A stretch of DNA of 64,000 nucleotides from positions 36,270,001 through 36,334,000 of the forward strand of contig NC_043014.1 in assembly GCF_006345805.1 (NCBI RefSeq). The letters run 5' to 3'. Below, one piece after another: positions 10,238 to 57,175 of the stretch (position 1 is its first letter; every line of letters begins with the position of its first letter). The notes beneath the pieces were generated by a model. That model worked only from the letters and a program-made list of their open reading frames with translations, searched no databases and was not told where the DNA came from. Both the position numbers and the translations under genes were made by a program. Source of the stretch: Octopus sinensis. Its lineage: Eukaryota.

Positions 10238-10317
10238 TTAATGAAAATGGCCAATAACAAGCAGTGTTGCTGCAAATTTCAAAATCTTAGTAATAATATT
10301 TGCATCAGATAATTTAT
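10238..10317 (-). CDS. Two-Ig gene copy A, last coding exon: DKLSDANIITKILKFAATLLVIGHFH* (hydrophobic, GPI-signal-like tail)
   Basis: Strong acceptor tttttttttctttctattacag|AT in phase 1; TAA at 10240-10238; exon continues to G|GTTAGT donor after 10200. The four exons total 768 nt = 255 aa + stop. Confidence 0.7.
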
Positions 10318-11946
10318 CTGTAATAGAAAGAAAAAAAAAGCACATTTCATTTTAATTTTGGTACAAGACCAAAAGCTTTGGTGAAGGTGGACATCGATTA
10401 CATCAACTCCAGTATTCAATTGGTGCCTAATTCATTGACTCTGAAAGAATGAAAAGTAAAGTCAACTTCGGTGGCATTTTAACTCAGAAAGCCGGACAAA
10501 ATGCCGCCAAGCATCTTTTACGGCGTGCTCATGAATCTACCAGCTTTCAGCCTCAGAAACAGTAATCAGCGATAATGGAGATTTACATAAACACATGTAA
10601 ACAATAAATAATCAGAAGAAAATCAAAACAACAAAGTTCCCAATTAAAAGGGAAACGCTACCCAAGGGTAACCAAGTAACCTCACAGTAACCAAGTAATC
10701 CTGAGTCACCCTGTTCACCAGGAATAATGTTGTGTTTCTCTCTCCTCCTTGCTTCTGTAACTACATGGGCACGCTTAGGTTACGACAATTCACTCGAGCC
10801 ATTCTTGTTATATTCATCCACAGTGTAACAGTTTTACTGGGAGAAAGGACCTTGCTCTCCACGCTCACTTTCCTTTTAAACATGAAAAGTCAATGAAGGT
10901 TTGGTCTCTTTCTCATTAATCGCATCATCTTTCACCATAAGCACCTAATAGAGGAAATCTGCCTACCCTTCAAAATCAAAGGAATGCAAGGAAGCAATCT
11001 TCACTTTGGAGTCGACCTATAACCAGATCCGTCCGAGAAGTGATTGCAGCTGGTAGACATAACTCCAGAAATCAACGATGCTCAAGCACTATACTAATAC
11101 GTGTACAAAATCTTCATCATGCAATGTGCATCAAGGGCAAGAGCAGCTGAGGGGAATATCATGTCGGTACATTTTTTCCGCCGAGGTCGGCTTTGCCTTT
11201 CATCCTTTCGGAGGTCGATTAAATAAGTACCTGTTACGCACTGGGGTCAGTATAATCGACTTAATCCGTTTGTCTGTCCTTGTTTGTCCTCTCTGTGTTT
11301 AGCCCTTTGTGTGTAGATGGTCTCGGTGCAACGTCCGCTAAGACCAATACCCTGCTGACAGAGGTGTGAGCGCCTGATGTCACACTAGGTGTCAGGTACC
11401 CTCCATAGGTCTATGCTTGACCCAAGAATGTCGTGTATATATGTGAGTATGCGCAGTGTCAGTGTATGTGTATGAATGTGTGTGTGTAGGGATGTATGTG
11501 TGTGTGAGTGTGTGTAGCGTGTGCATGTATGTATGTGTAGATGTGTATATTAGTGTTTGTTCCCCACCATCACTGGAAAACCAGTGTTGGTTTGTTTACG
11601 TGCCCACAACGTATCAGTTCGGGAATAAATACGACAAAGACTATTAGAAAATGGCCCAGCATGGCCACCATCCAGTAACTGAAAGAAGCAAAAGTTAGAA
11701 GATTAAAGATACCTGCATTGTCTCTGATTGCTTGCTGCTCAGTACCTTCAAATAAAAATTAAAAAAACATAAACAAAATAATATATAGAAATATAATATT
11801 TAAGTTTTAATGCAGTTTTTAATGCAGTTTTGTTTTCCAACTTGGAAATAAAATCAACATGTTTATCATTCAAAATGTGACCGCGTGTGTACCGTTGGCG
11901 ATTTTTTTCCTCCGTCTTCCCTTCTCTGGATCTTTCCTTCTCCTAT

Positions 11947-11981
11947 GTTTCTGACGAAGAGCTCCGCGCGAAACGTTAAAC
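11947..11981 (+). ncRNA. Minimal hammerhead-ribozyme-like motif in a short repeat
   Basis: GTTT-CTGACGA-A-GAGC TCC GCGC-GAAACGTT-AAAC; relatives at 6843-6880, 30441-30478 and 61078-61112 (-). Confidence 0.5.
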
Positions 11982-53190: not shown

Positions 53191-56100
53191 ACACCTTCAG
53201 CAAGTGTCTTCTACTATAGCCTCAGGTCGAGCAAAGCCTTGTGAGTGGATTTGGTAGGCGGAAACTGAAAGAAGCCTGTCACATATATATGTCTATGTCT
53301 ATGTATATATGTATATATATATCTATGTGTATATGTCTGTGTTTGTCTCCCCATCACCACTTGACAACTGGTGTTGGTGTGTTTACGTCTCCGTAACTTA
53401 GAGGGGGTTGACAAAAGGAGCGATAGAATAAGTACCAGGCTTAAATTATAAGTAGTGGAGTCTATTCAATCGATTAAAATCTCAAAACGGTGCCCCAGCA
53501 TGACTGCAGTCTAATAACTGAAGTAAGTAAAAGACAAAAGATGAAAGATATATATATATATATATATATATATATATATATATATATATATATATAAATA
53601 TATATATATATAATATACGACAGAGAGAGAGAGAGAGAGAGAGAGAGAGAGAGAGATGAATGGATAGATAGATAGACATGTTTCTTTATTAGCCACACAG
53701 GGCTGCACACAGACGGGACGGATTACAAAGTAGAGCTGTTCCTTATGGGGGGGGGGGGGAAAGAAAAACAGTGGGGTAGGTTTTCGATGAAAAGGGATCG
53801 TAAAAGGGAAAGAAAGAAAAATAACGATCAATAGGGATCGTGTATCACAGTAATGTCATGATGTAAAGTGTAAGGGGGAAAGTAAACAGGGTTTATCCGT
53901 GGAAAGAGAAGCCTTCGGAAAATACCCCGGTAACCTCGGTCAATAATGTTAAATGTTAACATTTATAGATAGAGGAAAGGGTAGTACAAATGTCAAAACC
54001 ATACACTTCAGCCTACAAACTTTTGCTAAAATACATTCAAATATGCTTAAGTTAAATTCTTCATAATAAGGATGGATTTATGGTTTTGACATTTGTACTA
54101 CCCCTTCCTCTATCTATAAATAAAAAAATTCTTGTTTGTCTCCATTGAACCAAGATAAGAAACCCCCTCCCCACTGATAGATCTAAATAGCAAAGTGAAC
54201 TCAGTGATAAGAAATCTACCAATGGAGAAGGACATACTACCACCACGTTCTTAATGATGAAATTAACCTCTCTGTCTATATATCTACCCTCTTTGTAATG
54301 TTGGCAAATGAAATAAGTATAAAAATGTACATTGTCCATTTAATTAAAAATAACTTTTATATGTGGCTGAAGATTGCTCGACATTTAACAACTGACGTAA
54401 TACTTACAATGTTTAATAAAATGAAGTAGCATGAAACAATTGTACTTCACTACCTTGGATATCCTTGTTGCTTATTTTGATTATAATCACCCCATTTGAT
54501 TTATATGGATAATACCATACCAATATCTGGTGCCTTAAAATTAAGTACCATATTCATCTGGATCTAAATTTTGTTGAACTTTATATATACATACATATAT
54601 GTATTTGTATATTTATTTATTCATTTATTTATATTACCTCAACATCCAAACTTCCTCATTCTACATTGAGAGAAAGACGGGATGGACGCTTCATTTTTGT
54701 GCTGGTGCCGCATTATGTCGTACGCGACTGAGAGGATTTGCATCCCCAACGTAGAATTTTTGATGTAATACATGTCCTTGAAGTAGTAATTGTGCGCGGC
54801 TGAAGAAGGCCATAGACACACATTATGCATTGTTATAAATCCGTCTAATAAAGGCCCGAAACATATGTACCGCTGAATCCTTGGCATCATGATTTTATTT
54901 TGATTAATATATATATATAGTAGAAATATGTTATAAAAAGAAAATATAAAATACACGTAGAAATGTAAGGGTAAAATATGAAAAATCAACGAAAATGCAC
55001 ATTGCAAATAAAAAAAGGCTATTTATGACAGGTAACGACAAATATATACATTTAGATTGACTGAGGTAGTAATACGAGTCATAAAAGTCATTATTATGAG
55101 ATGATTATAAGATGATAACAAAGTAAGAGAACAAAACGATCCATGGTTTACGCAAAGCTATCCATCGTTTCAAAAACACCGGCTAATATCATATATATAT
55201 ATATCATATATATATAACAGAAGACGAAGACAGCAGGTGTATTATTTTAACGCTCGGGATGAAAGCAAAATTTTTTAAGTCTCGAGCCTATGCTTTTCGA
55301 CAAAAAGGATTAAGAGGAAAAAAAACGGAGAGAGAATGAAGAAAACTGTGAAAGAATAAAGAAAATTGGGTAAGAAAAAAGGAAGTGCAGAGAAAAATTG
55401 TCCAACATGGCGAGATGACCGGAAAATAGAGGTTGAATGAAAGTGAGATAATAATCATAACGATAACGGTAATATCCAAGGATCTTAGGTGCACAAGCGC
55501 ATGTGTGTTTGGGAGGACAGTGTCTGTGAATGTGTTTATGTGAATGGATGCTAGTGTGTGAGTAAGTATGAGTGGGTTAGCTGAAAATTATGTTGACTTC
55601 TGTGTGTCAGTGTGTACATTATGTGAAGTGACATGCATTCCATGTACTGGCTGGGGTGAGTGTGTGCGTACGGTTGTATCTAATTTTTGTGCTCCCAAGG
55701 GCACGCTACTGATTATGTGAGAAATTTCAATAGTCTAAAGCAGTGCTTTTCAAACTTTTTGCTGGAGCGGAACCACAAGGAAACATTCCACTGGCTCGAG
55801 GAACCCCTGTGCAATAATTTAATAGTCTTATGTACACATATCTGCACAGGAGAATTAAAAATTACTGCCGATTTTAGCAGTTTTTTAACTTCTTGCGGAA
55901 CCCCTGGAGAGTGCTGGCGGAACCCACTGGTCTAAAGCCATCCCTGGAACATAAGTAATGTACGTTCGCAGTTTGGAGGAAATCAGTTGAAAAATACTGT
56001 CTTTATAAACTTTTACAAACACAGACAGAACGGGATATATATGTGCATATATATGTATGTATGTATGTATGTATGTATGTATGTATGTATGTATGTATGT

Positions 56101-57129
56101 ATGTATGTATGTATGTATGTATGTATGTATGTATGTATGTATGTATGTATGTATGTATGTATGTATGTATGTATGTATGTATGTATGTACGTCCGTATGT
56201 ACGTATGTATGTATGTATGTATGTATGTATGTATGTATGTATGTATGTATGTATGTATGCATATATGTATGTATATATGTATGTGTGTGTGTGTGTGTTT
56301 GTGTAAAATTAACCTAGTGTATGTGTTGTGTGGAGAAATGTGCGTTTTGTGTATTCCCCTGTGTGTGTGTGTGAATATGGACGTGTGTATATTTGTGAAG
56401 CTAACGTGTCTGTGTGCGCGTGTGTCTGTTGTGTTGCACGTGTAGCCGTTCATGTGACCTTATTCAGGTAGTGTGTGCACGTGTGTATGTGTGTTTATCT
56501 GTAATCAAATAGTGTGCACATCTATAGTGTATTTTTGTAGCGAATGTTATCCGTGTCAATGCGTGTTTATGCGTGTTGCGTGTGTATCTATATATTCTCT
56601 GTGTTCAGATATTATGTGTTTGTGTGGGTGTGAGAGTGTGCATGATGGTGTGTGGTGTGTGTACTGAATTAAACAGTGTGTTGTGATGTTCGTATTATGG
56701 TATTTGTGGCGAGCTGGCAGAAACGTTAACACGCCAGGCGAAATGTGTAACCGTATTTCATCTGCCGTTACATTCTGAGTTCAAATTGCGCCGAGGTCGA
56801 CTTTGCCTTTCATCCTTTCGGGGTCGATAAATTAAGTACCAGTTTCGCACTGGGGGTTGATGTAATCGACTTAATACCTATGTCTGTGCTTGTTTGTCCT
56901 CTCTCTCTGTGTAGCCCCTTGAGGGCAGTAAAGAAATAGGTATTTGTGGTGACGCTGTTGAAAAGTGTATGTCGGAGTGTAGATAATATGTGTGTGTGTG
57001 TGTGTGTGTTTGTGTGTCTGTGTGTGCGTGTGTGTATACTGTGTCTTTCAAATATGAAAGCATGTTATCTAAGAGAAGAAGATTCAGTGTTGTAACAGAA
57101 GAAAATATTGTTTCTTAATATTAACTTAC

Positions 57130-57175
57130 AAGCCGAGATGTAAGAAGACATCAGTAACATCATAACTAACAACAT
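57130..57175 (-). CDS. Two-Ig gene copy B, exon 1: signal peptide MLLVMMLLMSSYISA
   Basis: Same structure as 28083-28128 with one T>I change; T|GTAAGT donor. Confidence 0.75.

Follow-up and report, generated by a model that had tools for sequence, protein, structure and literature searches.

A 64,000-nucleotide stretch of the Octopus sinensis genome (RefSeq assembly GCF_006345805.1, contig NC_043014.1, forward-strand positions 36,270,001 to 36,334,000; hereafter the window, numbered from its first letter) carries tandem minus-strand copies of a gene for a short protein with a leader peptide, two predicted immunoglobulin (Ig) domains, and a hydrophobic C-terminus. The gene belongs to a family of about 40 loci in this genome, and among its closest copies the N-terminal domain shows an excess of amino-acid replacement, focused on regions equivalent to the complementarity-determining regions (CDRs) of V domains, that points to diversifying selection. 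We give about even chances to the reading that this is a variable cell-surface recognition family, most likely at the host–pathogen interface. Cephalopods are long-lived, large-brained animals whose immune recognition repertoire is poorly known. Their lineage expansions (protocadherins, zinc fingers, G protein-coupled receptors, and chemotactile receptors) each opened a field, and we know of no diversified recognition receptors described in cephalopods.

Gene copies and exon structure in the window

Self-blastn resolved the window into approximately two tandem units with a period of ~29 kb, whose collinear blocks are 92–98% identical at the DNA level, and tblastn of the spliced copy 1 protein against the window recovered a second exon set ~29 kb from the first. 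The units and exons are as follows.

9470-31100 (unstranded): segmental-duplication unit 1, blastn blocks collinear with 38393-60430
38393-60430 (unstranded): segmental-duplication unit 2, blastn blocks collinear with unit 1
63266-64000 (unstranded): start of unit 3, the 3′ flank of copy 3 only, matching 37917-38648 and 9470-9716
28083-28128 (minus): copy 1 exon 1, ATG with A at -3, leader MLLVMMLLMSSYTSA, phase-1 GT donor; one of just two such leader exons in the window
19753-20085 (minus): copy 1 exon 2, domain 1, V-set-like Ig, 333 nt, phase 1-1, AG/GT
17896-18204 (minus): copy 1 exon 3, domain 2, seven-strand C-type Ig by prediction, 309 nt; gene-conversion tract in common with paralogs c6 and c7
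11713-11745 (minus): copy 1 exon 4, 33-nt stalk mini-exon, GTEQQAIRDNA
10238-10317 (minus): copy 1 exon 5, DKLSDANIITKILKFAATLLVIGHFH and stop, a tail resembling a glycosylphosphatidylinositol (GPI) signal
57130-57175 (minus): copy 2 exon 1, leader, T13I relative to copy 1
48959-49292 (minus): copy 2 exon 2, as in copy 1 except for a 1-bp insertion that leads to a premature stop (DFQM*)
47099-47404 (minus): copy 2 exon 3, domain 2, 13 substitutions and a 3-bp deletion relative to copy 1, nearer to paralog c8
40808-40840 (minus): copy 2 mini-exon, GTEQKAIRDNA
39165-39244 (minus): copy 2 last exon, tail and stop

When the four longer copy 1 exons (28128-28083, 20085-19753, 18204-17896, and 10317-10238) are joined, the resulting 768 nt form an open frame of 255 aa, with all introns in phase 1 and AG...GT at every internal boundary. 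The product comprises the leader, two Cys-framed domains, and a short hydrophobic C-terminus without cytoplasmic residues before the stop. A first-pass annotation, made from the sequence without database searches, had proposed this splice, and its open frame, GT-AG sites, and phase-1 introns are present as described; its exon set was incomplete, having missed the mini-exon at 11745-11713 (33 nt, phase 1-1, AG/GT). With this exon the model has five exons and 266 aa, and the 255-aa product becomes the in-frame exon-skipped form. A homologous segment of 11 residues precedes the tail in protein models of O. bimaculoides and O. vulgaris (P0001, P0002, and P0003), and the mini-exon is probably a cassette exon.

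Open reading frame length alone proves nothing for copy 1, because long frames are common in this AT-rich window (58 stop-to-stop frames of at least 110 aa, many of them from microsatellites). The gene model is beyond chance on other grounds: the AG/GT-bounded exon 2 is open in 7 of 9, and exon 3 in 10 of 10, of the C18 paralogs in which that exon was recovered, the products of the exons match annotated proteins of three other octopods, and the predicted fold is confident. No leader exon of a neighbouring gene was found in window positions 1-9470.

The window genes form part of a clade of ten close copies on C18, with c1–c4 on the minus strand at 36.28–36.37 Mb and c5–c10 on the plus strand at 36.42–36.55 Mb; c1 and c2 are copies 1 and 2 of the window. 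The two head-to-head arrays were considered as a true palindrome, an arrangement rejected on intron distances, which do not pair mirror-image copies. The second full copy previously proposed at 57175-39165 is present as a unit and, as assembled, is not intact: one extra base in exon 2 (CAAAGT to CAAATGT) makes the frame read DFQM-stop. The O. vulgaris ortholog (CAI9737731.1 unit 3, P0005) reads DFQCKK and is open at this point, and it matches copy 2 at 214/215 residues, so that the lesion would be either very recent or a homopolymer assembly error (AA to AAA). The third copy, whose 3′ end had also been reported, contributes only its 3′ flank to the window; its last coding exon lies at C18:36334526-36334612, ~0.5 kb past the window end.

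Two further loci bear on the quality of these copies. The unplaced scaffold C9019 (73 kb) contains a c5-like copy at 3731-5337 (minus) and a c4-like copy at 51463-53703 (plus), 46 kb apart and both full of frameshifts, which mirror the c4/c5 head-to-head junction on C18; this scaffold is probably an unpolished haplotig. Because these duplicates of c4 and c5 are ridden with indels, the assembly evidently carries indel errors, and the copy 2 frameshift may be another. Copy c9, in which stops and multiple indels (+4 nt net) interrupt exon 2 (C18:36519174-36519525) and exon 3 does not differ from that of c8, is likely a pseudogene or the result of mis-assembly.

Diversifying selection on domain 1

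Selection tests were run on exon 2 in a gap-free alignment of seven intact paralogs. The pairwise ratio of nonsynonymous to synonymous rates (omega; NG86 method) was 1.5–15 in all 17 computable pairs of 21, the other four having zero synonymous differences (for example, 31 nonsynonymous to 0 synonymous). Minimum events across the alignment numbered 71 nonsynonymous to 7 synonymous (p = 0.002), and a maximum-likelihood (ML) fit of the GY94+F3x4 codon model gave omega = 3.38, with a likelihood-ratio statistic of 13.3 against omega = 1 (p = 2.6e-4). For exon 3, omega was ~1–1.7 (GY94 1.7), not significantly different from 1. The intron downstream of exon 2 diverges by 0.02–0.05 between most copies, like the synonymous rate dS, and the nonsynonymous rate dN of exon 2 is 0.09–0.19. 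Only this clean downstream intron served as the yardstick; the upstream intron was dropped, as repeats inflate its alignment (955 columns for 680 bp).

The replacements are unevenly placed: the B, C, E, and F core strands carry 0.33 per residue and the rest of the domain 0.76 (p = 0.006). The replacement-rich regions (0.8–1.6 events per residue) are the BC loop, the C′ strand, the C′C″ loop, the C″ strand, and the D–E region, which are the equivalents of CDR1, CDR2, and HV4 of a V domain. No nonsense change occurred in exon 2, against ~3.7 expected were all 78 events neutral. On these substitution counts, domain 1 is shown to be under diversifying selection, with amino-acid change at roughly three times the silent rate and focused on CDR-like regions. 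The first-pass annotation had read the cluster as recognition molecules, and that reading gains support here.

These data also bear on the possibility that the copies are largely non-functional young duplicates, in which the excess of replacements would reflect relaxed constraint and noise. Such an account would sit well with the frameshifts of c2 and c9 as assembled, with an exon 3 omega indistinguishable from 1, with the failure of the protein search to return an O. sinensis protein model for these copies, and with the lack of a canonical poly(A) signal near the stop: neither AATAAA nor ATTAAA occurs within ~940 nt 3′ of either stop (9300-10237 and 38230-39164, minus strand), despite the AT-rich DNA. 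Relaxed constraint, however, cannot give the pattern of domain 1, because it yields omega of ~1 and not 3.4, and dN exceeds intron divergence 2–4 fold. The core strands and the invariant Cys, Asp, and Tyr residues are spared, the expected nonsense changes are missing, all splice sites are kept, the O. vulgaris ortholog of c2 is open, and C9019 documents indel errors of the assembly. We therefore consider largely non-functional duplicates very unlikely, and diversifying selection on domain 1 remains the preferred account of the replacement excess.

Predicted Ig fold of both domains

Folding and the deep protein search used the O. bimaculoides homolog P0003 (LOC106880713 X1), the domain 1 of which is 51% identical to that of copy 1; domain 1 was also folded from the copy 1 exon 2 translation, letter for letter. 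The AlphaFold2 (AF2) model of P0003, computed with the family alignment, reached a mean pLDDT of 87.7 and a pTM of 0.75, with a nine-strand domain at residues 17-125 and a seven-strand domain at residues 128-221, both at pLDDT >90. Foldseek returned 826 Protein Data Bank (PDB) matches at E<=1e-3 for this model, the top ones all being V+C Ig ectodomains (Fab light chains, T-cell receptor chains, and butyrophilins). The AF2 model of copy 1 domain 1 (pLDDT 91.6, pTM 0.84) has eight DSSP strands of at least three residues and two short bridges, a C′–C″ hairpin included, and all 50 Foldseek matches listed for it contain V-set domains (VHH, VH, and VGSC beta4; template-modelling scores 0.46–0.61). 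A sequence profile of 19 family members searched against the PDB found Ig superfamily (IgSF) chains only, namely the FcgammaRII D1–D2 junction and Fab light chains, at a weak E of ~0.005, in an alignment that runs from the F-strand motif across the linker to the B-strand Cys that follows.

Residue patterns can be read alongside these models. By position, the intradomain Cys pairs of copy 1 are C40/C113 in domain 1 and C151/C214 in domain 2; across the family, the F-strand Cys of domain 2 is invariant, and at least 90% of members keep the F-strand Cys of domain 1 and both B-strand cysteines. Copy 1 holds every invariant column of the family core, F-x-C...C-x-K...C-x-D-x-x-x-Y-x-C in domain 1 and C-x-A...W...C in domain 2. 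Four further family cysteines (P0003 numbering) are conserved, C84, C96, and C103 being invariant and C187 present in at least 90% of sequences. Of the Ig motifs named in the first-pass annotation, the B-strand Cys and the D-x-A-x-Y-x-C-type motif stand, the latter as D-A-T-Y-Y-K-C leading into the F-strand Cys of copy 1 domain 1, and the Trp holds for domain 2 alone, where the canonical C-strand Trp is kept (W166 in copy 1, W164 and invariant in the family alignment). At the level of fold, and only at that level, the models support two Ig domains in the copy 1 product, the first of V-set type. The two-Ig architecture claimed earlier is borne out to this extent, the prediction having returned an Ig sandwich and not a non-Ig fold.

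Exon exchange between paralogs and evidence of splicing

Units 1 and 2 are ~1% or less apart in most intron windows, yet exon 3 differs between them by 13 substitutions and a 3-bp indel. In an alignment of eight paralogs that takes in exon 3 and its surroundings (2.2 kb), the flanks of c1 differ from those of c2 by 0–2 positions per 150 bp and from those of c6 and c7 by 4–7%; within exon 3 the relationship flips, with 12/300 differences between c1 and c2 and 1/300 each between c1 and c6 and between c1 and c7. From this flip of similarity, a tract of a few hundred bases over exon 3 was exchanged with a paralog 150–180 kb away on the opposite strand. The alignment thus shows short-tract gene conversion reshuffling V and C exons among paralogs.

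Evidence of splicing comes from a processed copy of the neighbouring paralog LOC118766814, located at 157.889 Mb on C3 (C3:157887503-157890883, minus strand, ORF 2268-1486), the parent exons being at C18:36225284-36228099. The retrocopy consists, in order, of the leader exon, the domain 1 exon, and the first 18 nt of the domain 2 exon, joined at exact junctions and followed by a TA repeat and unrelated DNA; its domain 1 exon is identical at 324/324 nt to the AG/GT-bounded 324-nt exon of the parent. That exon 1–2 and exon 2–3 junctions occur exactly in genomic DNA implies that the template was a spliced mRNA, and hence that at least one family member is expressed in the germline. The retrocopy keeps the 5′ end and not the 3′ end, which is unusual for retrocopies mediated by long interspersed nuclear elements (LINEs). 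Separately, the Logan-derived relative P0036 was considered as a transcript and rejected, as it is genomic, an exon running on into its intron, with a TGA translated as W.

Germline expression is relevant to a reproductive or conspecific-conflict role, in gamete recognition or on the sperm or egg surface, since proteins of that kind are often positively selected and GPI-linked. The omega above 1 on the exposed domain, the young lineage-specific copies, and the 100% identity of the retrocopy to its parent exon, which indicates recent germline expression of at least one member, would all agree with such a role. Retroposition, however, requires a level of germline transcription that is not peculiar to reproductive genes, and a set of ~40 genes with transmembrane, GPI-like, and mucin-stalk variants would be atypical, gamete-recognition genes usually being few. 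We regard a reproductive function as improbable and retain host–pathogen recognition as the preferred interpretation.

Membrane anchor and tail variants

By a manual rule check, the copy 1 tail DKLSDANIITKILKFAATLLVIGHFH consists of the small residues S-D-A, an 8-residue spacer (NIITKILK), and a 12-residue hydrophobic end FAATLLVIGHFH with no cytoplasmic residues. It matches the layout expected of a GPI signal and lacks the length of a transmembrane anchor, which makes GPI anchoring plausible, if putative. Family endings vary among short GPI-signal-like tails, a single transmembrane segment with a cytoplasmic tail (P0021 and P0040), and Thr/Pro-rich mucin stalks. Models of LOC106880715 (O. bimaculoides, P0007/P0011) include some without domain 2 and some that end in hydrophilic sequence in place of the hydrophobic tail, which hints at anchored and soluble splice forms.

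The same tail permits a modified reading in which the protein is secreted or shed as a binding protein, the hydrophobic peptide being an amphipathic helix or spliced out. A pure hydrophobic run of only ~12 residues with lysines just before it, the hydrophilic ends of the O. bimaculoides models P0007 and P0009, and an AF2 model of P0003 in which the tail is a low-confidence helix would all fit secretion. Set against this, the tail exon is 85–93% identical across paralogs and kept in O. bimaculoides, and sister subfamilies carry textbook membrane signals, either clearer GPI signals such as SGSGVQFSKWVLIINLILLLLDVAVSR (SGSG, a spacer, and an 18-residue hydrophobic end) or true transmembrane helices, which would make membrane attachment the family norm. 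A secreted product has, in our estimate, only a small chance of being the right one, and we continue with a GPI-anchored protein as the working model.

Family distribution and lineage-specific expansion

A phmmer search of 1.84 billion representative proteins returned 42 matches in total, and the source was looked up for 31. Octopods account for 27 of these (O. bimaculoides, O. vulgaris, O. sinensis, and Argonauta hians); of the other four, one is a multi-V-set protein from the axolotl (E=1e-9), two are unnamed Logan contigs, and the last, a repeat protein from a bacterium, is a false positive. On the 31 of 42 matches with a known source, a family found only in octopods is strongly supported, as far as protein similarity can tell. 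In a separate word-index protein search, copy 1 matched the four members returned at E = 4e-119 to 6e-90. Annotated relatives include LOC106880713 of O. bimaculoides (UniProt 'Ig-like domain-containing protein'), CAI9737731.1 and its neighbours of O. vulgaris, and LOC118766814-816 of O. sinensis, and they have the exon structure, leader, both domains, mini-exon, and tail in common with the window genes; the exons of the O. sinensis RefSeq protein XP_036366492.1 map to C18:36.65 Mb.

These relatives are machine annotations, labelled 'Ig-like domain-containing protein', 'uncharacterized protein LOC...', or 'Hypothetical predicted protein' in the databases. The models of several are wrong, drawn either as multi-gene fusions (726 and 1202 aa) or with neighbouring genes presented as 'isoforms'. 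One such pair, LOC106880713 X1/X2 (P0003/P0008), was considered as a shared leader with alternative Ig exon sets in the manner of protocadherins and rejected: the leaders differ (MLLV... versus MLLA...) and the Ig domains are 40% identical, as in separate neighbouring genes. No O. sinensis protein model for c1–c10 was returned by the protein search, and a search of the literature on octopus and cephalopod Ig proteins and on the family locus identifiers found no paper describing the family, a name, or a function. The family had been called hidden, which holds for these O. sinensis copies and does not hold for their relatives, annotated as uncharacterized or Ig-like in three octopods.

Three single-protein searches of the O. 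sinensis genome (2.72 Gb, 13,516 contigs) located ~40 domain-1 exons or loci. About 26 lie in the cluster of the window at C18:36.05-36.88 Mb and seven at C18:6.40-6.55 Mb; single loci are found on C1, on C3, and at C18:2.86 Mb, and unplaced scaffolds contain a few more. The C1 member (C1:167305891-167309535, 1429-2397, plus strand) is a complete intronless ORF of 322 aa with leader, domain 1, domain 2, transmembrane segment, and cytoplasmic tail; it is the ortholog of O. vulgaris LOC115221679, has a relative in Argonauta hians, and may be either a functional retrogene of long standing or the ancestral form.

An ML tree was built with the seven window-clade copies in which both Ig exons are intact (c1 and c3–c8). 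They group together (100/98), and just one O. bimaculoides gene, LOC106880713 X1 (P0003), is their sister (100/100); the remaining family members pair one-to-one between O. sinensis and O. bimaculoides. From a ten-copy clade sister to one gene among otherwise paired members it follows that the sub-array expanded after the two species split. The lineage-expanded cluster suggested by the first-pass annotation is thereby confirmed, and the counts rule out a well-annotated single-copy conserved gene.

Tandem expansion of this kind could also serve a code for cell–cell or self-recognition, homophilic or heterophilic, as in neuronal wiring, in which case diversification would create new specificities and not track pathogens. 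The small two-Ig, GPI-type architecture and the tandem clustering resemble neuronal IgSF codes, octopods are known for expanded adhesion clusters such as the protocadherins, the specificity surfaces of such families also diversify, and exon-level conversion fits a combinatorial code just as well. Yet Dpr/DIP and IgLON are conserved and slow, whereas omega here is 3.4 over a whole domain; a ten-copy clade that post-dates the split from O. bimaculoides would be very young for a wiring code; and no sequence link to Dpr, DIP, IgLON, or neuronal IgSF proteins emerged from the search of 1.84 billion representatives, among the 31 of 42 matches with a known source. We consider a self-recognition code unlikely, and again favour recognition at the host–pathogen interface.

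Other elements in and around the window

The spacer between units 1 and 2, and only that spacer, holds a further feature.

34452-37844 (plus): LINE-type retrotransposon, Exo_endo_phos_2 E=1.5e-5, RVT_1 E=1e-25

It is separate from the Ig genes, contains two ORFs of ~510 aa each (endonuclease and RVT_1), offset by one frameshift, and was inserted after the segmental duplication, because the other spacer has no counterpart. An RVT_1 fragment lies in intron 3 of both copies (15221-16323 and 44418-44933, plus strand), the remnant of a transposable element older than the duplication. A 134-aa open frame without a Pfam match is conserved between the units in intron 1 (23228-23632 and 52308-52712, plus strand) and is probably derived from a transposable element. 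Two simple repeats are conserved between the units: a long (TAGA)n array ~300 bp upstream of each leader exon (28413-28814 and 57460-57885) and an (AGA)n array that precedes each exon 2 acceptor by ~65 bp (20151-20256 and 49358-49491). Outside the duplicated units, a 125-aa open frame at 2733-3110 (plus strand) matches Pfam DUF7083 (E=1.2e-15).

Proposed function

The following model would join these observations. Each five-exon gene would encode a leader, a membrane-distal V-set-like domain, a seven-strand C-type domain, an 11-residue stalk, and a hydrophobic C-terminus. The protein would enter the endoplasmic reticulum, where its C-terminal signal would be exchanged for a GPI anchor, leaving the V-like domain displayed on the cell surface as a variable binding module. 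Its ligand would be a fast-evolving one, and for that reason the host–pathogen interface is the most likely setting, with the protein serving as a receptor of innate immune type or, alternatively, as a surface target of pathogens accompanied by decoys. The transmembrane paralogs of the family would probably be signalling partners, or else competitors, of the GPI-linked members.

Several observations weigh against this reading. Only 7 synonymous changes, among seven paralogs that recombine, underlie the omega estimate. A Pfam search, which had been proposed as a check on the Ig assignment, came out negative, with no family for the copy 1 spliced protein at E<=10; domain 1 of P0003 scores 14.5 bits against V-set (PF07686), below the cutoff of 26, and domain 2 of P0040 scores 14.8 bits against C2-set_2 (CD80-like), where the cutoff is 21 (E=0.03). 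With sequence profiles below threshold, the Ig identity rests on predicted structure, and copy 1 domain 1 is without any Trp, with Phe in the C-strand region. The hydrophobic end of copy 1 is short for a GPI signal and has lysines just upstream, visual inspection of the tails of transmembrane paralogs revealed no immunoreceptor tyrosine-based inhibitory or activation motif (ITIM/ITAM), and poly(A) signals are missing near both stops. With c2 and c9 frameshifted as assembled, part of the array may be decaying.

A stronger proposal can be made only tentatively and is in our view somewhat doubtful: that octopods evolved their own germline-diversified V-type immune receptor system, with ~40 genes of an IgSF family that has no sequence kinship to any known one, CDR-like loops driven apart by pathogens, V and C exons recombined by conversion into combinatorial surface receptors, and possibly paired GPI and transmembrane receptors. 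If so, cephalopods would possess an equivalent of the NITRs, FREPs, or CEACAMs. In any case, this is an IgSF family novel in sequence that behaves like known diversified V-domain receptor clusters. It was overlooked by profile annotation, having no Pfam domain, and yet is predicted to have an antibody-like V + C fold; present octopus annotations fuse, split, or omit its genes. As an octopod-only family with a ten-fold amplified clade and an omega of ~3.4, it offers a testable candidate for an independently evolved variable recognition system, and defined genes, domain boundaries, and hypervariable positions are now at hand for experimental study.

Comparison with known systems

Dpr/DIP and IgLON are multi-gene recognition sets of small Ig-only ectodomains, many of them GPI-anchored, and the octopod family resembles them in this, its GPI anchoring being putative. 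Those families are conserved across phyla under constraint, and DIP and IgLON have three Ig domains, in contrast to two Ig domains and an omega above 1 here; membership was rejected, none of them being among the 31 phmmer matches with a known source (of 42). The molluscan VIgLs (FREP, CREP, and GREP) are likewise a diversified IgSF group of the mollusc lineage with a proposed role in immune recognition. A VIgL is a secreted protein whose defining feature is a lectin-type domain at the C-terminus (fibrinogen, C-type lectin, or galectin), whereas the octopod proteins are membrane-tethered by anatomy; VIgL membership was rejected because the 266 aa are fully taken up by leader, two Ig domains, stalk, and tail, with no lectin-type Pfam match. 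Judged on sequence, Dpr/DIP, IgLON, and VIgLs are analogies and not relatives.

The novel immune-type receptors of teleosts (NITRs) and the amphioxus VCBPs resemble the octopod family as large, fast-evolving, tandem, germline-encoded families with V domains hypervariable in the CDR equivalents. NITRs are transmembrane proteins with signalling motifs or charged transmembrane residues, and VCBPs are secreted with a chitin-binding domain; the window genes differ from both in their GPI-like tail and in having no extra domain, and no sequence relationship was found.

Among vertebrates, the V–C2 surface receptor clusters under selection by pathogens, namely CEACAM/PSG, CD2/SLAM (including the GPI-linked CD48), and the butyrophilins, have, like the octopod family, an N-terminal V-like domain followed by a C-type Ig domain, and butyrophilin ectodomains are among the best whole-chain structural matches of P0003. 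The octopod family differs from CEACAM-type proteins in its octopod restriction, its four extra conserved cysteines, the absence of an ITIM or ITAM by eye, and the lack of detectable sequence homology. CEACAM-type clusters also combine GPI-linked and transmembrane members, tandem clustering, lineage-specific copy number, selection on the distal V domain, and gene conversion, all of which recur in the octopod family, the GPI linkage as a putative one. The closest analogies to it would be the CEACAMs, the NITRs, and KIR/LILR-like clusters.

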